Origin: Paragordius varius
Lineage: Eukaryota > Animalia > Nematomorpha
Length of the DNA stretch: 64,000 nt
Reading direction: 5' to 3'
Assembly: GCA_964247055.1 (NCBI GenBank)
Contig: OZ176056.1
Location: forward strand, 1,488,001 to 1,552,000
The notes beneath the pieces were generated by a model that saw only the letters and a list, made by a program, of their open reading frames with translations, was not told the origin of the DNA and did not search any database. Position 1 is the first letter of the stretch. Each line of letters starts with the position of its first letter. Positions 14,380 to 46,252 of the stretch are shown one piece after another. The translations under genes and the position numbers were made by a program.

Positions 14380-17300
14380 ATGAGTTCTACACGCCTTAGC
14401 GCTTTAAATAAGCGAAATATTCGAGAAAAACGAAAATGCACTGGTCTTTATCAATCTGGATCTCTGGATAATAATACTACTAATCCCATAAATAATTCTA
14501 CTCTTTCTTCTATGGATTCGGTATAAATTAAATTTAACGGACAAAATGTAAAAACATAAGGACAAATTAGTAAAGACCACCATCTTTTTAACCTTAATTT
14601 TCTTTTAAATTTATTTGATTACAATATTAAAATATATAAATCATTAATTGTGTATTATCAATTTACATCTCTAAACTACGTTCACCGCAAATTGATGAAT
14701 TATTATTAAAAAATTTTAAAAAATATGATTGTATTTTTAAAAATTATCTTTGTTTTTAGATTTTGTCCTTAATTTTTTGAAATTTTTTTAATAATTTACA
14801 AAATTTTAGCCGTCTCAAAGTGACATAAATCAAGCCTCCAATACTAGTTTATCCAATTTAATGTTGGAAACTGTAGAAAGAAACCCTTCTCCAGATGCAG
14901 ATATTGAAGAAGATCAGATTGTAATTATTTTTGTAATATTTTTTGTGGATACGATAATTGAAATTATTCAAACAAAACGTAAAAATTATAAAGACAAATT
15001 TTGTTTCCAGAAGCGGCCATTTTAAACTTGATTTTAAATATAATTCATTGTTTCAAACTGCAAAGTTATTAAATAGAGATGCAAATTGGTAAAACAATCC
15101 ATTATATAATTTACTATGTTATTAAACATTTTTTATGGGAAAATCATTAATAAGTATGGTTGTTTTTTGGAAAAAATTAGTGTTTATTGTCTTTACGCTT
15201 TGTCCGAATTATTTCAATTCTTACAAGATTTTTATATTTTATATTTAGTTCATAAAAATTCCATCCAACGAAACGTTAATCAAGTAATTTAAAGTTTTGT
15301 TTCCACAATATTTAAAAAATGTAGTTTGGCCATTTATAAGATATGTATAATAAAAAAGCAAACAATTGAATATGAACTTTTTACATTTTTGTTTTACTCT
15401 TTTGAAACTTTTATTTTTGAACTTTTCGTTTTTTTTTCGAATGAAAAAGTGCTCGATCAAAACAACATGGCTTCTCTAGTTTAGATGAAAGTTTTAATAA
15501 TACATCATTCTCAACTGCTAAAACTACTATGAAATCAAATGTGGATCAACAAAAATATTTATCAACGCGAAAATTTGCTAAGGTTGACAGAAGTCCAACC
15601 CTACCCCTTTTAGATGGAAACAATCGTGAGAACAACAGTTTTATTCAATCTTTGCTAAAAGAGGATCCCGGGTCTCTGATAGCCTCAAAACAATTCGATA
15701 ATTTAACGGCAAAAGCGGAAATACTAGAGCTTTTGAATGAAATTGATGAGGTATATTCGTTGATTTTAATTCTTTAAGTTTTATATATAGTAAAGAAAAA
15801 TTTATCAATATATATGTTTATTTAACGCGATAATATAAGCACCCGAAAACGGGTTAAAAATTAAAACTGTTTATCAAAATGTAGGAACTAGGCTAGATGG
15901 AAAATTTAGCTTTTAACACTTCGATTCAAATTGGGGTATCTAAATACCCCAAACTATATTTAAATTGTAATTTTTTAAAAACTACTGAAAGAAACGGTCC
16001 AATTTAAATTTATGCTTCTATCCTAATACAAATTATATAAATAAGCCAAAATATCTAAATAAAATTTGGTTTTGACAAAAAAGTTCCATATCAAACTACA
16101 TCGACGCCATTTTCATTTTACAATTTTTTCCAAAATATCGTGTTTATTTGATTTTAAAGCTAAAATGAAAGCTAATTTTTTATTTAAATTACATTTAACA
16201 TTGATAAAAACACTAAAAAATGGTTTATTTTGTTTTAATTTTAAATTTACCTTGTGCACACATGTCATGTTGACTAAATTTTTACCTTAAGGTTTTACCT
16301 AAAAATAAGTAATATCAAGTATTTTTAAACGAAATTTTTTATAAATTTAAATTCATTAATGTTATAAAAGTGCAAATTTTTGCCATGGTTTCAATCCATT
16401 CCATATTTTTTAAATTATTTAATTTTAAACAGGCCTGGGATATTTAACTACCCCAATTTGAATCGAAGGACCAAAATGACTGTGTTGTATCTAAGTGTTA
16501 AACAGTAATTTAATTTTAATAAAAATTTATGCCCCAAAAAAAGGTATAAATTTCATTTTAATTTTATAAATTTTTTTGTTAAAAGTAATTTCATCTTCTT
16601 CTTTATCATTGTACCATTTTAACATTTTTTCAGTTTTTTAATAATCCATCAGTTACCACAAAATTTTGACCTCAAAGAAATTTTTATTTTGTTCAAAATT
16701 ATGTTTGTCATTGATGGAGATCAAAGAAATTGTATTCCGCTCTAATTTTTTTAGTATGACACAAATGGCTTTTTAACTAAAATTTAATAAAAGTTTTATT
16801 TAATTATAATTTTTTTTTGATTATATAAATATAAATACACTTTTATAAAAAGTTAATTTAATTTTATTATATATAAGTACTGCTATTCTATAAAAATATT
16901 TTACGTCAAAACACAAGCATTCAAACTAAAATAAATATATTTGATTTTATTCAAACAACTTTTTATTAATCACTAAATGACATTTTTTCCAGTATCATTA
17001 TTTTATTATCAAAATTAATTTAATTCTATTTAATTATGTAATATAAATTAAATTAACTCTACAATTATATCATACATTTCTTTGATCCAAAAAAGTCATT
17101 TTAGTTCAGTCAGTTCCGCATTTTTAATTCAAATAAGAAATGTTATCTATCGTATTTTATAATTAAAATATTTTAATGCTTTTTATTGTATTTTATAATT
17201 TTTAGCTTAAATTAGCGCTAAAGGAGGAAAAAGAAAACAACAGTTTTTTAACTCAGGCTTTAGAGGCCAGTGAAACAACCATTAAAAATTTAGAGGCCGA

Positions 17301-18562
17301 AATTGAACGCTACAAAAAAGGTTGTGGATTTTTATTTAAATTTAAATAATTGTTGAAAAATTTTATAAAAAATGTTCAGATTTTAATAAGTAATTTTGAT
17401 AATCTTAGTAGAATTTCGAAAAATATTTAAAATTTATAATTATGCTTTGGAAATAAAGTAATGCAAAAATCTTCCAAATACTAAACGACATTTGTTCTAA
17501 AGACAACCATACTTTTTTAAACCATGATTTTCTATACAACTTATCGTTTCTTAAACTAAGGAATAGAGATGTAAAGTCGTAACTAATTAAATTATATATT
17601 TTAAAATACTAATATATAGTTTTATAAAAAGGTTTAAAAAATATGGTTTTTAATAGATTTGTCTATTAGTTTTACATTTTGAGTGTATATATTTTTTACT
17701 GTAAAAACGGTTTTATTTTTTGTGTGTTTGATAATTTTTAGATTTTTAAACATTATATTCAGGAAAACTTTAACAAATAAATATTTTGATTTAATTATGA
17801 TCAAAAAAAAATTTAATTTAAAATATAGGAACTCCAGAGTGACTGTGAAATTTAAAAAATCCTTTCTATGCAGAACCACCTACATTCCCCAACTTGAGAC
17901 AAACAAATGAGGGCAAAATAACAATCTTTTCCTACATGATTTATACATTTATATATATAAATATATATATAATTAATAAAATTAATTTTATACAATATAT
18001 AAATATTTTAATAAATGTGATTCAATATAATTAATTTTAACTTAAATTAATTAACTAATGCGTATGTTATGTTTTAAAGCGTTACTTAAATACATAGTGC
18101 ACTAAAGTTGATAATTCCAAACCGCGGTTTACCGTAAATCCAATATTACAAAAAAAAAGTATTGTTCTATGCATATTAATTAAAACATCTCACAAATCCA
18201 AAATATATCCCTTTAAAAATTAATTATAATTTTGCAGCATTTTTAATATATATTCTGTAGAAACATCAAAATTATAAGACACTTAAAACGATAATATTTA
18301 TTCATCCTTGATTTTTTTTATAAAACCAATATGATTATAATTGTAAATTTTATATATAACCAATTAATTATCCTGTAATATGTGTTATAAAAAGTATTAA
18401 ACTTGAATATTAAAACTTAATTTTACAATTTACATTATTATGTTTTTAATTTCCAAAAAAATTAGTATTTAAAAAAAGTGTCTATTCATTTTTTCAGCGG
18501 TCAAAATCAATTAAAGTTTAAAATAATTTGTATTTTCAGGTGAAAGATCGAAAAATTATTAA
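14380..18562 (+). CDS. Uncharacterised Ser/Asn-rich protein with a C-terminal coiled coil (about 240 aa)
   Basis: Exons 14380-14520, 14810-14920, 15249-15283 (uncertain, needed for phase), 15450-15750 (start uncertain), 17206-17320, 18540-18562 (alternative acceptor near 18498). The heptad-like segment is AKAEILELLNEIDE|LKLALKEEKENNSFLTQALEASETTIKNLEAEIERYKK. No family recognised. Confidence 0.6.
15917..16497 (+). mobile_element. piggyBac-like MITE (TTAA TSD, CACTT ends)
   Basis: TTAA-CACTTCGATTCAAATTGGGGTA ... TACCCCAATTTGAATCGAAG-(spacer)-AAGTG-TTAA. Confidence 0.8.
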
Positions 18563-18891
18563 TACTGAATTCATTTATTTGAGTTAGGGGTAAAAAAATA
18601 ATTTTAGGGTTTCATATTAAAAATAAATAATTTTTCTATTGCACATAAAATATATTTTTTGGTATTGTGATATAAAATTAACCATTATTACAGTATATAT
18701 ATATTGTAAAGTTAAATATTTTATAAAAAATGTTTTAAAAGCGATATCATTATCTAATGTAGTAAAACCCGTATATATTGGTATAAAACTTGGCTGTTTA
18801 AATCACAAACATAAAAAATATATATTTTTTGTAAACATTATTATTACAGATGCAAATGCGATTAAGTTCAATTTCAAAATCAAATTAAATC

Positions 18892-19021
18892 TCAGGATTT
18901 CGCCGCGTTTTCAAAGATTTTGCTGATAAGAAGGGAGAAATTAATAGCACAAAAGATTCCCAGAATTAAAAACAGGCATGCCATCATAGCTGCCAATGAG
19001 GCTTGATTCGAAGGAACTAAA
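18892..19021 (-). CDS. Duplicated alternative terminal exon (TM11) of the ENT gene
   Basis: Acceptor ttttattccag, the same phase as exon 22127-21995, encoding (N)LVPSNQASLAAMMACLFLILGIFCAINFSLLISKIFENAAKS*. Confidence 0.85.
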
Positions 19022-20049
19022 CTGGAATAAAAAAAATTTTTTTTGAAAAACATATATATATAAGATCACCCTTGAACATTTATTATTTCAAAATTACCTT
19101 AAACATTTTACAAATCATTCTTTGGGCTAATAATTTAACTTAATGTTTTGATATTGAAATTTATTAACATTTTTGGATTTTTAAAAACACATAATTTATT
19201 TTGAGGCTAAGTTTCAAATGTTCGAGGGTGAATATGTAAAGTGTAAATGGTATGCATAAAAAAATTAAATTTCCTAAAATTTTATATAAAATAGGGATTA
19301 TTGGCATTTTCCGAGGAAAGTTTAAAAAAATATTATCGAAAAAAATAAAGTTATGATTTACAGAGGATGTTTATAATTAAGCAATTTTCTTATCAGAACA
19401 ATTATAGATAGCGAAAAGAGTTAGACTTTTAATACAAGCACCGAACGTTTTTAATTTATATGGTTTTATATAAATAAATGTTGAATGACACTAGGAGTGA
19501 TTGATAGTTAAAAATATATATAAAATTAGATTTTAGAAATTACCTTCCGAAGATAAATTATTTATAATTAAAAAAAATAATTTTTTCATCATATTAGGAC
19601 AAATAAAAATTTGCACACATTATGTTAGTTGAGCCCTAAAAATGGGCTTAATTCAATATTTTCAATCAATTTATAAAATATATTCAAACTAAAGGGTAAC
19701 TTAATAGTAAGCTTTATGAAGATAATATATATCAAAAATCATCCAGAACAGATAGTGTTTATAAAATAAATGCAAAAAAGCCGCAATTATACGATGAAAT
19801 TAATCATTAAATATATTAGTAGTAAACAGTTAAATAAAAGGTAATTATGATATTACATCATATTACAAACCATATATTAGTTAAAAGCTTTTTTTCGATT
19901 GCTGGTTATATATTAAGTTGATTGCTAATTTTTCAATCATAACTAGATATCGATATCTTTAATGGTGGCGAATTCCATAAATGTATAAAAATATTTGAAA
20001 GTGTATTATCAAAAACGATTGATAAAATTTGGTTTATAAATATATGTCT

Positions 20050-20710
20050 TTTGATTTCTAATAACTGATTCTCGGGCGCTTTTAGGCGATTTCGATTATT
20101 GATGCGAAGAATAAAAGGGGTTAAATAATGTCTTACTTACATAAAATGATTTAAAAATAATATAAATTTGTGATGCATATCAGCGGTTTAAGCGTAATGC
20201 GAAAAAAATTATCTAGTGTCGTTTTCATTAAAACTATAAAAATAATTTTTATGGACATTTTATGATTTGATATATTTTAAATAAAAGCAAAATGTGATAA
20301 ATATTAAATCCCGGTGTTTTTTTGTCGATTTCGATTATTAATGTGAAAAAATTACAGATTAATTTAAAAATTAAGCGTGATTCAATAAATAAAGAAATGG
20401 GAGTGAATATAGTACAGCGATAAATTAAATCAATGCGAAAAAAAATTATCTAATGCCATTTAAGTCAAACTATAAAAATAGCTTTTATGTAAATTTTATA
20501 TCGATGCGATGCAAACAAATTAAGTTTCGAATGAAAGTGATTTGTATTTATGCTAAAAAATCTCGGGAGCTTTTAGGCGATTTCAATTTTAAATGTAAAA
20601 AGATATGAATGCTTTTAAAAATTTGATTAAAAAGGGAATATAATATGAATTCTGCGAAAAAGATACAGCGATAATATTGTATATAAAGAATTTTTGAGCG
20701 AACGGTTTTT
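20050..20710. repeat. About three degenerate ~245-bp tandem units
   Basis: CTCGGG.GCTTTTAGGCGATTTC...CAGCG...GCGAAAAAAATTATCTA-type motifs recur near 20070, 20310 and 20560. Confidence 0.5.
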
Positions 20711-21023
20711 AATATGAGCCTAGTATACAAATATGCAATTTGAATTTAGATTATTTAAACACTTAATATACATTACCCACATTATATTTGACCAAGTCAC
20801 ATTATTGTAGGACAATTGGCAATACTGTAGCGTATAATATAAAACAAATTTTAGGCTTGTAAGAAAAGAAAAAATCGTTTATTTTTCACCCATTGATATT
20901 TTTACTTATACGTTACGGTATTGTCAATTGGCCAAAATGTAAGGTGGTCAAAAATAGATCTGGAAATCGTAATAGTCAATGAACCTTTTATAGAAAAACA
21001 TAAATGAAAGCTTTAGATATATG

Positions 21024-21063
<40 letters not shown>

Positions 21064-21994
21064 TTTATTTTATGTACAGTGATATTGAATGATTATGGAT
21101 ATATATAGGTATATGTATAGATATGCATGTATGAGAAACATAATTAAGCATTATATTATGTGCATTGGGTATTCAAAACAGATATTAATCAATGCAAAAT
21201 TTAAGAACACGTCATATTTTTGTGGTAATTTTAAAAGCATAGTAACCCTAAAAGTTAAGAAAATCCTTAAAATGTTTTTCGAAAATTTATCAGCATTTTA
21301 AAAGATTTAAAAAGCTAAAATTGTTGCAAAAATATTTAAGTTTATCAAATTCAGCGCCTTAAAGAAAAATTAATTAAGAAATAAATTTAAAGATAAATTC
21401 ATTGGGAATTATATATTGAGATACATTCTATTATGATAAAAATGAAAGTGTCTGATAATAATATCTGAGCAAAACAAAAAGTGTATGTGCATGCAGTTTT
21501 TAAAATAACTAATATCTGAGCCGTTTATTGTCTTCAAAAAGAAACTAAAACATTAATTGTTAGCGCAATACAGAATCTATTTGCTGCATAATTCATAAGG
21601 CAGAATAATTATAATAAAATTCATAAAAAGATAAAACACTACAATAAACAGCCATATTATTAGTTAACTAGGTCTTTTATTTGGTTAATAGAAAAAAATT
21701 TCATAAAAATATTAACTTTTAAGCTTAAAATGATACATAGTGTTAAGAAAGCAAAACAATAAATTTTGGTCAAATTATTTTCACCAATAACCAATTAAAA
21801 AACCAACATATCCAATAATATTAAACTGTTGATGAATTTATAATGATAGAAATAAAAATGTTCATGCTTTAAAATAAACTACACAAAATAAAAATAATTC
21901 AAATTATAGTTTTAAAAACAAAAAAGAGTAATTAGAACATAAAATTAAAATCAATATAATAAATCCATTTCAAAACACACAAAAATAAATTTAA

Positions 21995-22910
21995 TTAATG
22001 TGCCGCATGCAGTGAAGAAAATATTTTTGAGATTAGAAGGGAGAAATTTATGCCAAAAAAGATTCCTAAAATAAGGAAAAGGGCAGCCATCATTCCAGCT
22101 AGGGGCGCTTGGTTAGGGGGCACTAATCTAAGATATAGTAGGGTACAATACAGAAAAAAGTATCAATAAAGTTAATTTTTGTGGTGCTAAAAAATGTGTT
22201 AGTTATATATTTTTTGGATTAAACCTGAATTGTTCAAATCATAAAATGGATAAATTGCATTAATTTTACTATCAGAATATAAATGTTCATCTGTAAACTT
22301 TCTAAAGCCATATATTATATAAAACACAAGTATATGTAACCCGTTTGATTAAATTTTTTTTACACGTTAATCAACATTCTAAACTAGAGGGCCTTAAAAA
22401 ACATAACCATAAAAAACTCATATTCTCCGAATCTATTGTCTTTAGTAAAAAACTGAGCATATATAACCTTTTAGAACACTATACATTCTTAAAACCTTTG
22501 AAAACATTTTTTTTTAAAAATAGTCAAAAAAAAGTTAAATAAACTTACTTGGGGGCATACATCATAGTGAGTGAACTAAAATATCCACTGGTGACCGACA
22601 TAAAAATACCCAACAAAGCATAAATCCAATCACTCTTTATATAAACTGGGAACCGTCTTATATCAGGTCTGTAATTACAGCACAGGAATATGGGAATTAG
22701 TAAGGCACGAGCTACAATAGGCACCCAAACCCATTTAGGACCAGGCTTAAAAAATTGAGTTTCAGAAAAAAAACGTAAATTTCAAAAACATAAAAATATA
22801 TATAATAATTTAAAAATAAACCATTTCCACTTCAAATTCACCCTTGAACAATTTAAATTCCCCCTATGAAATAAATTAAAGGTTTTTTTTAAGATTAAAA
22901 ATTACCTGTA

Positions 22911-22949
<39 letters not shown>

Positions 22950-24117
22950 TTAAAAAAAATTGTTTAGAACTTAAATTATATTAATAAATATACTAAGCCA
23001 TAAAGATATTCATATTAATAATAAGTTATATAAGTTCGAAAACACATAATTTATTTTTAGGGTGAATCGAATTGTTCAAGGGGTGAATTTAAATTGTAAA
23101 TGGTATTTTTAATATAATTTTAAAAAAAGGTAATAAAAAATTATATTTTAAGATAACATATGTGAAAGAATAAAATAAACGTCCTTTATACCAATACGCA
23201 TATTCAAAATTCTAAAACATAAAAAGTTTGGCAAAAACCATATGATGCCCAATATATATGTATATATATATATATATATATTTATAATATATATATGCAG
23301 ATATATATAATATAAAAAGTTAAAAAAATTAATAACTAAATTCAGGGCCATAAAAAGGTACTTTTAGGACCGTGGTTTAAAAACCACTAAATTCCATTTT
23401 ACAAATAACAAGGCTACATATTATTTATATACATAACATCTCTCTTTACAATATAGAAATTAAAATATAAAGACAAATAATTGTTTAACCATATTTTTTA
23501 ACCTTGAATATTTCCTATATTTAATTATCATTGATTGTGTTACCATTTACATTTTTATCGCATACTTTGCAATTAAATCAATGAATATTTAAATAAAACA
23601 TGTTTATAAAAGTATGCTTTTCTTTTGAAAAAACAATAATTGTCGTTATATTTTACGTTTTTTATGTACAATTTCAGTTATTACTGTAATAAGGCGCTGT
23701 ATATTTGAAAAAAAGCCCATTTCTAAAGGTGAAGGGGGGGGGGGGGAAGGGAGCAAATTTTACGATCCTTGATTTTAAATCAATTCGTCCTAACATGTAG
23801 TATATTTCGTTTTTTTACTTAAATTATATGGTAAATTCAAAAAATAGCAAAAATATCCTATGTACATTCTACTATGGCACTGTGTGATATTCCATTTTAA
23901 TTAAAAATCAATCATCAATATAGTATTGATGTTAATAAAATATCACCTACCTTTGTTTTATATTATGAAACATAATTGTAAAGCATATAAACAATAGTCA
24001 TCACCCTTTTCCCTAATAAAGGGTACGGAATTAAAAATTATATTAATATGCGTGTAGTACCAAAAATACAGAATAAATTATGTATTTCAAGTTAAACGAC
24101 CCCCCCTTATATATATA

Positions 24118-24152
<35 letters not shown>

Positions 24153-26616
24153 AAACAAAACTTAATTTATGCAAAAAAGACTGACACATTAAAATAACCC
24201 ATTTGGAAATAGAGACATTTCTATTTTTATCTTTGTCAAATGTGCTCTTAGAAATAATATTTCTAAGAAAAATTATATGAAATTTAGATTTTGAATAGCT
24301 CATAAAATTAAATATAAACAAATTACCTTACGAACATATTCGGATATCATATTCCCAATTAAGGCAAACAGATTGAAGTTAAGGAAAGTGATGATGGGTT
24401 GATAATATTTTTCTAAAAAATAAAATTTAAACTATTAAAGCTTAAAAACTAATATATTTAAAAGGACAATTTTTGTATTTATATTATTTTAAACCATTTG
24501 TTTTGGGGCTTCAAAAAAGGAAATAGAGATGTAGATTGGCAAAACACTTAATTACATATTTTTACAAATAAATTATTTAGATATAGATGAAGAAATAAAA
24601 AAATTTTCTCACATAAAAAGATATTTTTTGTATGCATTTACATTTTAATTTATATCAAAACTCAATATAATATAGAAACCAAAATGATTTATAATTCTTA
24701 AAATTCAATGAAAAATTAATCCTAAAAAATACCTGATATAAAAAAGTTAGGATCACTCCTATGTATGTTTGCTTGTATGGCAGGAAATATGGTTAAGGTT
24801 ACGAAAAAGCTAAAAAATACTCCAAAACATTGAACCCAAATCTATTAATATAATATGAATAAATTTGAATTTTATTCAAAAGGCTATTAATTTGAAATTT
24901 GCATAAAAACAACCATTTAAATTAATGACCTTGAGAGTTTGCTTGTGATTAATATATAATTAATGACAAAAATATAATATTTTGACCTATCAAAAATATT
25001 TATATGGTCTTAATCGAGTTTTAAATGGCCTGGTATTATTTTATTGGCACAAATCCAATAATTTATGGTAGACTAATTATCATGCAATAAAAATAGATTA
25101 TCATCTATTAATACATCACATTTCTTTATAGCCTAAGGCCAAATGTTATATATAAACACACATGGATTGTGTTTAATAATGAGCTTATAAAAATAGACTA
25201 TAGCACATTTTTTCTCACGATATAATTACGAGAAATAAAATGGTAAAAAATGCGTAATATATTTTCAAAATTTCCTAATTTCTAAGAACGGTCGGTCGGT
25301 ATATCCAATTTTTAAAATAATCAAAGAGGAAATGGAGTCATATTATATAAAAAAATTTGTATAAATTATATTGAATTTACCTTTTTAAAAACTGAAATAT
25401 AATCGTCTCGCGAGTATTTGGCACGTTTTGTAGTTTTGAGTGTGGCATCAACACCTTGTTCTAATAATTCTTTAGCCAAAGGTTCAGTCTTCAAATGGTG
25501 TCGATAAAATCGCTAGAATATTTATATAAAAATTGCAAATATGGAAAAAAAATTTCCTTGAATAAAAATGGCCATAACCAAAAGCAATCGTAAAAATTTA
25601 AAAAACATAGAGACAAAACATAAAATGTGACACTTAATATTAGTTTAAAAACCAACCCTAATTTACCCAATTTAACCCATGTTGTATTTGGATTTAAAAT
25701 AAAAGAAGTATATTGATCAAACACACAATTTAATATTTCGCATTTTGTAATCTCCTAAATATATTGGTTTAAAATTTGGACGTAAAAAATGATATTTCTT
25801 TTTAAAAAAAGTTACCGTTAAAGGCAAAGCAAAATACGAATCAAAGCAGACGAGTAAGATAAGTTGTGCAGCTATGAAATACCATATGGCAGCGAGTCGT
25901 GGGTTTGGCGAAACAGCAATTACAAGAATATTAACGAGAGCCACAATAGTTCCACACAAATTATTTCCAATAACGACGGCATTTGTGTAACTCATGGGTA
26001 AACTCCCAACTAAACCATAGATTGAATTTTGATACAATCCAGTGGCACTGTTCATAACAACAACCGTAATCATGGTGAGAACAAAAAATATTTTGGGCCA
26101 TCCTGAAGTGTTAGCAATGGCTAAAATAACGGTAAAAATGCACATAAAAACATTGATAAGGATTGATATAGGTATCCGCGGGTGTGTTTGATAATTCAAA
26201 TTGCTATCTTTATTCCGTGAATCGCCAAATTGAATGAATAAGTTTACGGCATTTAAGATGACATTGGGGATTTGCGACGCAATACCCAAATAATTCAAAA
26301 AATTGTCTCGGTACTCAGTGGTACCAGTAACATTTGGGCTTAGTTTGAAATCAACAAAATACTATCTAATTAAAAAATAAAAATATACTGAATTCGCATT
26401 GATAAATACATTCCATGGAATAAGAATCCCAATACCATGTATAATCATTATAATATACACCAAATTAAACCTAGCCAATTTTACAAATTTTTACTTATCA
26501 CGCGGTGCATAGTCCGTACTAAACTGCCCTTTTTCACTGTCGATCTCTAATTTTGAGTTATCTTGATTGTCAGAGTATTGGGAGTTATCTACAAGAGATT
26601 CATTGTGTTTTTCCAT
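21995..26616 (-). CDS. Equilibrative nucleoside transporter (SLC29/ENT family), 468 aa, 11 TM
   Basis: Exons 26616-26495, 26470-26389, 26361-25816, 25512-25381, 24841-24733, 24412-24327, 22745-22549, 22127-21995 (1407 nt, in frame). Family motifs: PRDKFNLVYII..HGIGILIPWNVFINA, YFVDFKL, GLYQNSIYGL, YTNAVVIGNNLCG, FFVTLTIFPA, FNLFALIG, TSGYFSSLTMMYAPK, AGMMAALFLILG. Confidence 0.95.
26362..26388 (-). other. 27-nt intron (GTATATTTTTATTTTTTAATTAGATAG)
   Basis: It contains an in-frame TAG; removing it joins ...INANS to YFVDFKL as in ENT homologues. Confidence 0.85.
26471..26494 (-). other. 24-nt intron (GTAAAAATTTGTAAAATTGGCTAG)
   Basis: Retention gives an in-frame TAA; removing it joins APRD-K-FNLVY, the conserved pre-TM1 motif. 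Confidence 0.85.
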
Positions 26617-32233: not shown

Positions 32234-35200
32234 TACCATTTTTCATGCAAAAACATCATTTTTTCAACCAAATGCAACATTTTTTCAACCAAACACAACA
32301 TTTTTTCAACCAAACACAACATTTTTTCGAGCAAACGCAACATTTTTTCAAGCAAACGCAACATATTTTCAAGTAAACGCAACATTTTTTCAACCAAAGA
32401 CAACATTTTTTCAAGCAAAAACAACATTTTTTCAACCAACGACAACATTTTTTCAAGCAAAAACAACAATTTTTTTAAAATAAAAAACCATTTATTTATT
32501 TTATGACATATTAAATTTAAAGTTAATGTAAATTAATTTTAGCGTAGAATTATGATTTTTATTGTTTTATCATAAATATTTGATGGTACATTTTAATTTA
32601 GCCCATAAATTGCATTATTTATTTATATTAATTATTATTTTCTTTTACAATTTAAGTTTCTCCTAATCAATCTATACTGCGCTTCAAGATTGTTCTTTTA
32701 CATTTAAACTTAGTCCTATAACACTTCAAGTTGAACCTTCAATATTTAATTTTTATTCTAACGTTTATTTATGAGGCAATAAAATATTCATTATTTAATC
32801 ATTTAAACCTATTTTTTTATTAACCTAAACCTTTAAGTGAATACATTTCTTTCATAAGAACTGTAAATCCTTATTGTATAAATTAATATTAAAAAATATC
32901 TATGCTTTGTGGGTTATTGATGGTAATATTTAGTTTAAAACAATAATAAATTTATAATATTGATAAATTTAATAAAATTTTCAAACAAAGTTGTTTTACT
33001 ATAATAATATTAATTTTGATTCAAAAACTAATAAATAGAGATATTAGTTTAAATTTAAAAAATAGATAATTACACACAAAAATAACGGTTGTATGGAAAC
33101 TGCTAAAATGTAAGGAATTTTAAGCGAAGGATAACTTTAAATTTTTAAAGAGAGTCTTAAAGTGCAAATTGTATTGATTGATAAAAAAAATATTTATAAA
33201 TAAATAATGCAATTTATGGGCTAAATAAAAATGTAAATCAATCATACCATCAAATATTGATGATAAAACAATAAAAATCATAATTCTAGTTAATTTACAT
33301 TAACTTTAAATTTATGTCTTAAAATAAAAAAAATGGTTTTTTATTTTAAAAAAAATTGTTGCATTTGCTTGAAAAAATGTTGTCGTTGGTTGAAAAAATG
33401 TTGCCTTTGGTTGAAAAAATGTTGCGTTTGCTCAAAAAAATGTTGCCTTTGCTTGAAAAAATGTTGCGTTTGCTTGAAAAAATGTTGAGTTTGGTTGAAA
33501 AAATGTTGCATTTGGTTGAAAAAATGATGTTTTTGCATGAAAAATGGTATACATATATATATATATATATATATTTTTATCAATCAATACAATTTGCGCT
33601 TTAAGACTCTCTTTAAAAATTTAAAGTTATCCTTCACTTAAGATTCCTTACATTTTTTGCAGTTTCCATACAACCCTTATTTTTGTATATAATAATCTAA
33701 TTGTTTAAATTTAAAATAATATCTCTATTGATTAGTTTTTGAATCATAATTAATATTTTTATAGTAAAACAACTTTATTTGTTTCGAGGTAATTTTCTTT
33801 AATATATTAATATTATAAATTTATTATTGTTTTAAACTAAATATTACGATCAATAACACACAAATAGATATTTAATATAGTTAATTAATAGAAAATAATA
33901 AGGATAACGGTTCTTATAAAATTAAAGATTTAAGTTATAAAAAAAAATAGGTTTAAAATGATTGAATAATGAATATTTTATTGCTTCATTAATAAACGTT
34001 AAATCAAAATTAAAATTTTGAAGGACCAAATTAAAGTGTTCTAGGACCAACTTTAAATTTACAAGAACAATCTTGAAGCGCAGTATAGATTGATTAGGTG
34101 AAACTTAAGTTGTAAAAGAAAAAAAATAATTAATATAAATAAATAATGCAATTTATGGGCTGAATTATAATGTTTAAAAATCAATTATACCTCAAATATT
34201 TATGATATAACAATAAAAATCATAATTCTAGGCTAAAATTAATTTACATTAACATCAAATTAATATGTCGTAAAATAAAAAAAAGGTGTTTTATTTTAAA
34301 AAATTGTTGTCTTTGCTTGAAAAAATGTTGTCTTTGGTTGAAAAAATGTTGCATTTGGATGAAAAAATGTTGTCTTTGGTTGAAAAAATGTTGCGTTTGC
34401 TTGAAAATATGTTGCGTTTGCTCGAAAAACTGTTGTCTTTGCTTGAAAAAATGTTGCGTTTGGTTAAAAAAATGTTGCATTTGGATGAAAAAATGTTGTC
34501 TTTGGTTGAAAAAATGTTGCGTTTGCTTGAAAATATGTTGCGTTTGCTCGAAAAACTGTTGTCTTTGCTTGAAAAAATGTTGCGTTTGGTTAAAAAAATG
34601 TTGCATTTGGATGAAAAAATGTTGTCTTTGGTTAAAAAAATGTGCGTTTGCTTGAAAATATGTTGCGTTTGCTCGAAAAACTGTTGTCTTTGCTTGAAAA
34701 AATGTTGCGTTTGGTTAAAAAAATGTTGCATTTGGATGAAAAAATGTTGTCTTTGGTTGAAAAAATGTTGCGTTTGCTTGAAAATATGTTGCGTTTGCTC
34801 GAAAAACTGTTGTCTTTGCTTGAAAAAATGTTGCGTTTGGTTAAAAAAATGTTGCATTTGGATGAAAAAATGTTGTCTTTGGTTGAAAAAATGTTGCGTT
34901 TGCTTGAAAATATGTTGCGTTTGCTCGAAAAACTGTTGTCTTTGCTTGAAAAAATGTTGCGTTTGGTTAAAAAAATGTTGCATTTGGTTGAAAAAATGAT
35001 GTTTTTGTATTTTTCAACCAAACGCGCCATTTTTTCAAGCAAACGCAACATTTTTTCAAGCAAAGGCAACATTTTTTCAAGCAAAGACAACATTTTTTCA
35101 ACCAAATACAACATTTTTTCATCCAAACGCAACATTTTTTCAAGCAAAGACAACATTTTTTCAAGCAAAAACAACACTTTTTTAATATTACAAAGAATTA

Positions 35201-36406
35201 CTATTTATTGTATGACAATTTAATTATAAATTATTTATTTAATTTTAAGTTAATGTAATTTATTTTTAGCGTTGAATTGATTTTTATCGTTTTATCATCA
35301 TTTGATGGTAAATTAATGGATTTTCAAACATTTTGATTTTGCCCAATTGCCTTATTTATTTATATTAATTATATTTTTCTTTTACAACTTTAGTTTCGCC
35401 TATAATGATTTTATATAATTTGCACTTCAAGAGTTTTTTTGAAAGTTTAAAGTTGTCTTTCACTTCAAGTTGCTTTTACTTTTTTATTTTGTTTTTAACT
35501 TTTATCAATTAAATCGAAAATGATTTATCTGTTTTATTGTTTTTAACCTATTTTCTATTATTTAACATAAATTTTAAATCGATATCAACTTTTAATCTTT
35601 GAGAAACCGCATATTAATTTCTTAAAATAATTTTAGATTATAAGATTTTATTACGAAATGAAAAAATATATGAGTTTTCTGGGTTATTAATTGAAATTTT
35701 TCATAAAAAACATTAAAAGTTTATAATTTTGTTCAATTAAAAAAATATTCTGAAACAAAAATGTTTTTCAATAATTTTTTTATTTTTAAATGGATAAATA
35801 TATGATAAATAAAGAAAATTAGGTTAATAAATAATAAAAAAAAATAAATGCAAAAATTAGGGTAAAACAAAATTTAAAATTTTAAGGACCAACTAGAAGT
35901 GTTCAAGGACAACTTTAAATTTTCAAAGACACTCTTGAAGTGCAAATTATATAAAATGATTATGGTGAAACTAAAGTTGTAAAAGAAAAATATAATTAAT
36001 ATAAATAAATAAGTTAATTGGGCAAAATCAAAATGTTTAAAAATCAATTAATTTACCATCAAATATTGATGATAAAACGATAAAAATCATAATTCAACGC
36101 TAAAAATAAATACATTAACTTAAAATTAAATAAATAATTTATAATTAAATTGTCATACAATAAATAGTAATTCTTTGTAATATTAAAAAAAGTGTTGTTT
36201 TTGCTTGAAAAAATGTTGTCTTTGCTTGAAAAAATGTTGCGTTTGGATGAAAAAATAGGGTATTTGCTTGAAAAAATGTTCCGTTTGCTTGAAAAAATGT
36301 TGCGTTTGCTTGAAAAAATGTTGCCTTTGCTTGAAGAAATGTTGCGTTTGCTTGAAAAAATGGTGCGTTTGGTTGAAAAAATGATGTTTTTGCATGAAAA
36401 ATGGTA
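32234..36406. mobile_element. Nested foldback complex with TACCATTT/AAATGGTA termini and 21-bp (AAAAAATGTTGCGTTTGCTTG-type) arrays
   Basis: Arrays at 32234-32470 (-), 33350-33549 (+), 34295-35008 (+), 35009-35175 (-) and 36195-36406 (+). 32234-32640 is inverted against 33190-33549, 32470-33185 against 33575-34290, and 35170-35420 against 35930-36190. The termini abut (TA)n tracts. Confidence 0.8.
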
Positions 36407-36769
36407 TATATCTTCCAACTTTTATCGCCATTTTAATTTTTAGAGTGGGTCTTTACCCTGGTTAGTTTGATAAAAGAACTGAATTAAATTTATTGTTTCA
36501 TGAGTAAAATGCAAAGTTGATTGAATGATTTATTTTTAGAAAATTAGTTTTATTGAAAGGGAGCTTACGAGGAGAGCGGATTAAAATAGGGGCTAATTCA
36601 ATGGCTAGACCAGCGCTTTCATATATCGTTTATATGATTTAAACTAAAATAGGGGTCCTCCTATTACAGTTGACTGAAACTATATAGGCAAATAAAAATA
36701 TAAAGACACATATTTTTTTCAAAAGACAACCATTTAACCTTAATTTATATATTTATAAAAATAGAAAAT

Positions 36770-44447: not shown

Positions 44448-45518
44448 TTAAGTAATATCAATGCTGTATAAAGTTTTTGGAATAAAAATACTATGGTTTT
44501 TTATAAAAATTTTGGTTTGTGGGTGAATCTCTCTTTTCTCTTCTCGCCTATTAAGAAGTTCATGTTCTGAGCTCTGTATGTATAAGGCTTCCTTTGTCAG
44601 TCTAGACTTTAGTTTCTTCTCGATGCCCAAGATATTTATTGTTGTAGAACAACGGTGATCATTGTCTAAGCAATGTAAGAACATGGCTGAATTCTTGCAT
44701 CTTAGGTGTTCTTTGTACCTCAATTTTATGTCGCGTTTTGACTGGCCTATATATTTGGCAGGACAGTCACTACAATTCAATCTGTATATTGTGTTTTCCA
44801 GCTCGACATCGCGAGTTCTCAACATAGTGAGAACGTTCGCAGTAGGTTTGTAGTAAACCTTTAAATTCTTTTTCCTTTTTAAAATTTTGCCTAGACTGGT
44901 AGAAAATCCGCTGTAAGGAAGGCAAACATTGCGAACAATTGGGATACTAGATGATTGCGATTCATTTGTATGACAAGTGATCGGTGTTGCAGTGTGCTCT
45001 GTGTCATTAATAGGATTGATCGATGCTGATGTATTTTTGTTTTTTAGGACTGTGTTAACGGCCGACGTAATCCATTCCTGGTGGTAACCCTGGCGTAGCA
45101 GATATTGTACGACTTCACCTGTCTGTTTTATCTGCATTTCTAATGTGTTTGGTAGAAGGAGTGTACGCTTTATATAGCTAGATACTATGGCTTTGTATGT
45201 GGATGGCGGGTGATTAGATTCTAATGATAGGAAGCTGAAATTAAATAATTTTTATAATGAACTTTGGTGGTTATGGATATCTGGTTGTCATTGCGGATTT
45301 TAGATATGACAATGTCTAAAAAAGGTATTGAGTTGTCGACTTCCTCTTCTTTTGTGAATTTTAATTCCGATTCGTTGTTTAGGGCTATAAATAATTTATT
45401 TTGGTTAATTTCTGAATCTATTATTAAGATGTCATCAACATATCTCTTGTAAATTTTATTTCGTTGTTTGCCAAAACGCTTTTTTCAATGTGTCTGAGGC
45501 ACAACTCACCTATGACTG
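44448..45518 (-). pseudogene. Penelope RT C-terminal remnant plus GIY-YIG endonuclease (frameshifted, 5'-truncated)
   Basis: Reads SVIGELCLRHIEK.. / YKRYVDDILII..LKFTKEEEVDNSIPFLDI.. / SNHPPSTYKAIVSSYIKR..GY..TIYRLNCSDCPAKYIGQSKRDIKLRYKEH..SAMFLH..RLTKEALYI..LLNR. Two frame breaks are visible in the RT part. Confidence 0.88.
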
Positions 45519-46252
45519 AAAGCTATATAAAGCGTACACTCCTTCTACCAAACACATTAGAAATGCAGATAAAACAGACAGGTGAAGTCGTACAATATCT
45601 GCTACGCCAGGGTTACCACCAGGAATGGATTACGTCGGCCGTTAACACAGTCCTAAAAAACAAAAATACATCAGCATCGATCAATCCTATTAATGACACA
45701 GAGCACACTGCAACACCGATCACTTGTCATACAAATGAATCGCAATCATCTAGTATCCCAATTGTTCGCAATGTTTGCCTTCCTTACAGCGGATTTTCTA
45801 CCAGTCTAGGCAAAATTTTAAAAAGGAAAAAGAATTTAAAGGTTTACTACAAACCTACTGCGAACGTTCTCACTATGTTGAGAACTCGCGATGTCGAGCT
45901 GGAAAACACAATATACAGATTGAATTGTAGTGACTGTCCTGCCAAATATATAGGCCAGTCAAAACGCGACATAAAATTGAGGTACAAAGAACACCTAAGA
46001 TGCAAGAATTCAGCCATGTTCTTACATTGCTTAGACAATGATCACCGTTGTTCTACAACAATAAATATCTTGGGCATCGAGAAGAAACTAAAGTCTAGAC
46101 TGACAAAGGAAGCCTTATACATACAGAGCTCAGAACATGAACTTCTTAATAGGCGAGAAGAGAAAAGAGAGATTCACCCACAAACCAAAATTTTTATAAA
46201 AAACCATAGTATTTTTATTCCAAAAACTTTATACAGCATTGATATTACTTAA
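45519..46252 (+). pseudogene. Inverted duplicate of the Penelope thumb/GIY-YIG region
   Basis: Identical protein to the minus-arm ORF from SYIKRT onward. The N-terminus of supplied ORF 45464..46252 is antisense RT sequence. Confidence 0.85.

Follow-up and report, generated by a model that had tools for sequence, protein, structure and literature searches.

Two candidate last exons, each encoding a version of the final membrane helix, in one ENT/SLC29 nucleoside transporter gene

Can a single nucleoside transporter gene end in either of two homologous exons, each encoding its own version of the last membrane helix? The question is raised by a stretch of 64,000 nucleotides (here called the window), the minus strand of which carries a complete, single ENT/SLC29 gene at 26616-21995, with eight coding exons as read from the sequence, and, further downstream, a second copy of the last of these exons. 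The proximal copy is referred to here as 8a and the distal copy as 8b. An earlier reading of the same DNA from its letters alone (the sequence-only reading) had proposed that both are old, constrained and interchangeable ends of one gene. An answer depends on whether the gene is complete upstream of the two copies, on whether 8b belongs to this locus at all, on how long both copies have been kept as coding sequence, and on whether 8b could by now be out of use.

The upstream part of the gene could be assigned exon by exon on the minus strand. Coding exon 1 (26495-26616) opens with an ATG at 26616, and its N-terminus aligns weakly to the Gordionus proteins P0156 and P0151. Exon 2 (26389-26470), which contains TM1, has 92% identity with residues 40-65 of P0156 and is contiguous with exon 3 at residue 66. 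Exon 3 (25816-26361; 182 codons) matches Pfam PF01733 with an E value of 7.9e-24 and is 75% identical to P0156. Exon 4 (25381-25512), which encodes the central loop, and exon 6 (24327-24412) were recognized by blastp against the nearest database proteins, and exon 5 (24733-24841) is 77% identical to residues 289-323 of P0001. Exon 7 (22549-22745) covers TM9-10, matches PF01733 with an E value of 1.8e-17 and ends in phase 2. On the PF01733 (Nucleoside_tran) profile, exons 3 and 7 score 85 and 64.1 bits, respectively, against a gathering cut-off of 29.8, and phmmer returned 282 matches at E<=1e-10, of which those with a source name are ENTs. In an exon-by-exon blastp comparison, exons 2 to 8 follow one another in the Gordionus proteins with zero residues missing, which confirms the junctions read between them. 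As in other SLC29/PF01733 ENTs, those of Gordionus being the nearest, the full exon set for 11 membrane segments is present, and the predicted coding capacity is that of a full 11-helix ENT including the C-terminal TM11. Two of the introns, both within 26362-26494, are very short. The one between exons 1 and 2 has 24 nt (GTAAAA...GGCTAG) and is placed by the ENT N-terminal motif together with the reading frame; the one between exons 2 and 3 has 27 nt (GTATAT...AGATAG), and the Gordionus proteins are continuous across the junction. Introns of 0.4-1.6 kb occur in this gene as well.

The donor of exon 7 at 22549 (...ATG TAT GCC CCC AA|GTAAGT) is in phase 2 and is common to both possible endings; unspliced read-through of it meets an immediate stop (AAG TAA). 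The proximal last exon 8a (21995-22127, minus strand) encodes TM11, a 7-residue tail and a stop, and matches PF01733 profile positions 277-307 of 309 with an E value of 0.0095. It is preceded by ...tatcttag and its translation is (K)LVPPNQAPLAGMMAALFLILGIFFGINFSLLISKIFSSLHAAH, then the stop. The distal last exon 8b (18892-19021, minus strand), found by tblastn, lies 3106 nt downstream of 8a on the same strand and encodes TM11, a 6-residue tail and a stop. It is in the same phase and has a CAG acceptor (...ttttattccag) behind a T-rich tract; its translation is (N)LVPSNQASLAAMMACLFLILGIFCAINFSLLISKIFENAAKS, then the stop. Joined to 8a, the codon split by the intron becomes AA|A (Lys); joined to 8b, it becomes AA|T (Asn), a difference that the sequence-only reading had not included. 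Both acceptors are AG with 12-14 pyrimidines at -22 to -3, resembling the other acceptors of the gene. The two exons are thus homologous, in the same phase and each equipped with its own acceptor and stop, and the earlier description of these signals agrees with what is found in the sequence. Downstream of the stops, the first AATAAA follows after 313 nt for 8a and after 312 nt for 8b (window 21681 and 18579). We take the likeness in spacing as a probable coincidence, given that the 3' regions are unalignable and the genome has an A+T content of 77%.

When every exon was compared with the whole window by tblastn, 8a and 8b were the sole pair (79% over 38 aa, E 6e-15), and no second copy of any other ENT exon scored better than E 0.1 in the 64 kb. 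The earlier observation that no further ENT exons lie between the copies therefore holds, and it extends to the sequence around them. The spacer (19022-21994, minus strand) has a GC content of 0.23, with a (TA)n run, and contains no ENT relic and no ORF of at least 75 aa on either strand. At about 19960-20610 it includes three tandem units of about 240-250 nt that are 66-83% alike, with no coding potential seen. A MITE-like element, about 200-300 nt long and bounded by terminal inverted repeats, occurs in two copies, one in intron 6 (22814-23110, with arms at 22814-22866 and 23058-23110) and one at about 19060-19266, the end of which is some 40 nt upstream of the acceptor of 8b.

It is important to ask whether 8b might be an artefact of assembly, either a haplotype left uncollapsed or a piece of some paralogue put in the wrong place, or might be an exon of some other gene. 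Nothing speaks positively for these explanations; the genome is repeat-rich, and a MITE-like copy lies just upstream of 8b. Against a haplotig, the two exons share 71% nucleotide identity with flanks that cannot be aligned, a combination incompatible with two versions of one allele. In four sequencing runs of this species, 80-85% of the words that make up the 4.2-kb stretch are present, and an assembled contig from a separate study, from a relative that is about 5% diverged, covers the 3' half of 8b together with the flank downstream in a piece of 198 nt with zero differences. Because some non-coding pieces are equally difference-free, this piece is not evidence of constraint; what it shows is that 8b exists in an independent sample. 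Against another gene, the spacer lacks any ORF of at least 75 aa, and the nearest non-low-complexity ORF of that length below 8b (15529-15777) is on the plus strand. A haplotig or misassembly was rejected on divergence, flanks, word coverage and the independent contig, and the circumstance that the sequence-only reading had named as fatal to its proposal, a paralogue exon displaced by misassembly, is contradicted by the same divergence, coverage and contig. Taken together, we regard an artefact or a foreign exon as highly improbable.

The divergence between the copies indicates how long both have been kept. Over the 36 compared codons, 8a and 8b share 30 of 36 residues (83%), and 31 of 108 bases differ, distributed over codon positions 1, 2 and 3 as 7, 5 and 19. 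Fifteen codons are identical, 15 differ only synonymously and six change the amino acid, exactly the synonymous and replacement counts given before; one Ser codon is switched between TCA and AGC. Comparison of dN and dS, which the sequence-only reading had suggested as a check, gave a low dN of 0.12-0.14 (about 0.13) with saturated dS, undefined by the Nei-Gojobori method and estimated by maximum likelihood at 4.7, a value that should not be taken literally. Outside the coding sequence no alignable flanks were found: the introns on the acceptor side and the 3' UTRs fail to align, and similarity ends at the coding borders. From the unalignable flanks and the diverged synonymous sites it follows that the duplication is old and that the protein-coding part alone has been kept. 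Gene conversion between the copies was considered and rejected, since it would have homogenised the synonymous sites. The base composition of 8b (GC 0.40, GC3 0.43) resembles that of the other exons (GC 0.26-0.42), and its flanks have a GC content of 0.18-0.22.

How much of this history 8b could have spent free of selection was estimated by simulating neutral, AT-biased drift of the exon and scoring how often it retained no stop and had at most six replacements. This outcome had a probability of 0.26 at 0.10 substitutions per site, 0.043 at 0.15, 0.004 at 0.20 and 0.0001 at 0.30. Neutral drift of 8b is capped in this simulation at about 0.15-0.2 substitutions per site, with about 0.1 still compatible, and a long-dead pseudo-exon is ruled out. 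Since saturation at synonymous sites puts each branch at about 0.5 substitutions per site or more, the cap means that 8b has been selected as coding sequence for most of its existence. On this reading of the sequence it must have functioned as a coding exon through most of that time, in a signal that is silent on its present use and on constant membership in the ENT gene. The pattern of saturated dS, dN of about 0.13 and rejection of the neutral model points to long-term purifying selection on both copies, as had been proposed from the letters alone, and it is compatible with recent relaxation. The last point leaves room for a different history, in which 8b is a recently orphaned and now unused relic, either the last exon of a tandem ENT paralogue that was long functional and has lately had its exons 1-7 deleted or a former alternative exon that has lately fallen idle. 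Drift up to about 0.1 substitutions per site fits the simulation, and such a relic would be too young for decay to show. It would, however, need special timing, with use lost within roughly the last fifth to third of a branch of about 0.5 substitutions per site per copy, and the acceptor, frame, stop and exon-like GC of 8b are all intact. We consider a relic of this kind, the main rival explanation, rather unlikely, though with a chance that deserves to be weighed against the remaining evidence.

The relatives of the gene bear on the same question. Both among 1.84 billion representatives and in a word search, exon 3 is closest to five or six ENT models from Gordionus sp. m RMFG-2023, at 68-75% identity, and the next matches have about 50%. 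Identity to Gordionus is 62-75% in exons 3 and 7 and ranges from 36 to 92% across all aligned exons. That the protein's nearest relatives are those of the horsehair worm Gordionus makes the earlier premise of a parasitic animal most likely correct. Gordionus has at least five ENT paralogues, all on one 54.6-Mb contig, and the presence of so many on one chromosome favors a relic to the extent that tandem ENT duplication takes place in the phylum. In a tree of the exon 3 region, however, the Gordionus paralogues group together (97/95 support), and the window gene is sister to them. Their clade excludes the window gene, so the Gordionus array arose after the split; there is no sign that the window lineage ever had such an array, and no trace of another ENT exon from a deleted neighbor in the 64 kb. 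Of the Gordionus models, P0152 alone has TM11, and it is 61% identical to 8a and 56% identical to 8b. It is further from both copies than they are from each other (83%), which suggests that the duplication of 8a and 8b is younger than the Gordionus split. The models of the closest Gordionus paralogues, P0001 and P0151, are without TM11: P0001 ends one residue past MMYAP, as donor read-through would, and P0151 runs on past the donor with 19 unrelated residues. Annotation has probably missed the last exons of both, which would be located far downstream.

The amino acid differences between 8a and 8b can be read against a C-terminal alignment of 114 ENT homologues. In the loop and TM11 there are six replacements from 8a to 8b (P>S, P>S, G>A, A>C, F>C and G>A). 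At tail position 4, where 8a has Pro and 8b Ser, Pro is the commonest residue (45/114); at position 11 (Gly in 8a, Ala in 8b) Gly is found in 104/114; at position 15 (Ala, Cys) Ala in 96/114; and at position 25 (Gly, Ala) Gly in 113/114. Position 24 (Phe, Cys) is variable, with Cys in 17/114. Thus 8a matches the ENT consensus at positions 4, 11, 15 and 25, conserved small residues, and for this reason 8b is the faster, derived copy. The replacements in 8b are all small-for-small and compatible with a membrane helix, and they would fit either a tuned alternative helix or some relaxation. The departure of 8b from near-invariant Gly residues is therefore to be counted on the side of a relic and against present use, Ala at the Gly kept in 113/114 and at the Gly kept in 104/114 being equally readable as relaxed constraint. 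Searches of PDB sequences with the 42-43 aa encoded by exons 8a and 8b gave no significant match. We take tail positions 21-25 to correspond to G441-L442-A443-L444-G445 of hENT1, in which case the equivalent of L442 is presumably Ile in both 8a and 8b and the copies differ two and three residues further on. The statement in the sequence-only reading that Leu442 of human ENT1 affects selectivity and inhibitor binding is backed by the literature, where L442I in TM11 lowers adenosine uptake (PMC5359181).

Searches at the transcript level add to the case for a relic, as they gave no RNA support for 8b. The stretch was found in the four runs of this species and in one run of a close relative, and none of these is recorded as RNA. 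Three small runs that we guessed to be RNA, compared with 18500-22800, showed no exon coverage and no joints, with two spurious matches of about 20 nt. Word searches of protein databases found no fragment matching 8b (range covered 23-73 aa) or exon 7 (range covered 36-114 aa). A search for docking/selector RNA pairing in intron 7, below 8a and above 8b found best duplexes no stronger than those of shuffled sequences. Two further points count against use of 8b: recent loss is compatible with the drift of about 0.1 substitutions per site that the simulation permits, and the nearer, good acceptor of 8a and its poly(A) site would have to be bypassed.

Having weighed these points, we think it reasonably probable that the locus is one ENT gene with two alternative last exons derived from a local tandem duplication. 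This reading is favored by the shared phase, the acceptors, the stops, the relation of dN to dS, the exon-like GC and the lack of any relic of exons 1-7. Both would descend from one exon that was duplicated locally in tandem long ago, with a period of about 3.1 kb. Exon 7 would then join either 8a or, by passing over 8a with its poly(A) site, 8b, across a 3.5-kb intron. The products would be two 11-helix transporters, identical apart from the junction residue (Lys or Asn), the six loop and TM11 residues, the short cytoplasmic tail and the 3' UTR. The anatomy, the age of the duplication and the lasting purifying selection on 8a and 8b are seen in the sequence itself. That exon 7 is spliced to 8b at present, and that there is any regulation or functional difference, is something we infer only.

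Tandem duplication of exons is a known source of isoforms, frequently in channels and transporters (PMC9741552, PMC8373072, PMC5740500). Like tandem duplicated, mutually exclusive exons such as 5a/5b of SCN alpha genes, 8a and 8b are homologous, adjacent, in the same frame and phase, old and under purifying selection, and in both cases a single membrane segment of a transport protein is encoded in two alternative forms. Unlike the SCN alpha exons, which are internal cassettes, the ENT duplicate is terminal, and the choice would lie between alternative last exons with separate stops and poly(A) sites, the second copy being a candidate for use predicted from genomic sequence. A limited literature search on ENTs and mutually exclusive exons found nothing relevant, and as far as that search shows a terminal-exon duplication in an SLC29 gene is undescribed. 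We know of no ENT with two TM11 exons. Among 264 ENT proteins there was no pair with shared upstream sequence and a different TM11, a negative result that is weak because isoforms had been merged at 90% identity. If 8b is used, the locus is a natural experiment on a helix of the SLC29 permeation pathway, offering two versions of TM11 with the rest of the protein identical, and it extends the short list of ancient tandem-duplicated exon substitutions by an example at a gene's end. An unused 8b would be an ordinary young relic. The larva of a horsehair worm lives in its insect host and absorbs nutrients there, and the adult is free-living and does not feed. It is conceivable, if doubtful, that the two TM11 variants are switched between these stages by choice of the last exon, with altered substrate or inhibitor selectivity, and that duplication of 3' ends is a recurrent source of isoforms in this genome.

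Elsewhere in the window, two ORFs in opposite orientation, 44448-45137 on the minus strand (229 aa) and 45464-46252 on the plus strand (262 aa), are identical over the 229 shared residues, and the pair looks like a recent inverted duplication of a mobile-element gene. At 34244-36418 a short coding-like repeat forms a long tandem array, in which several frames are open on both strands (e.g., ...NIFSSKRNIFSSK...).
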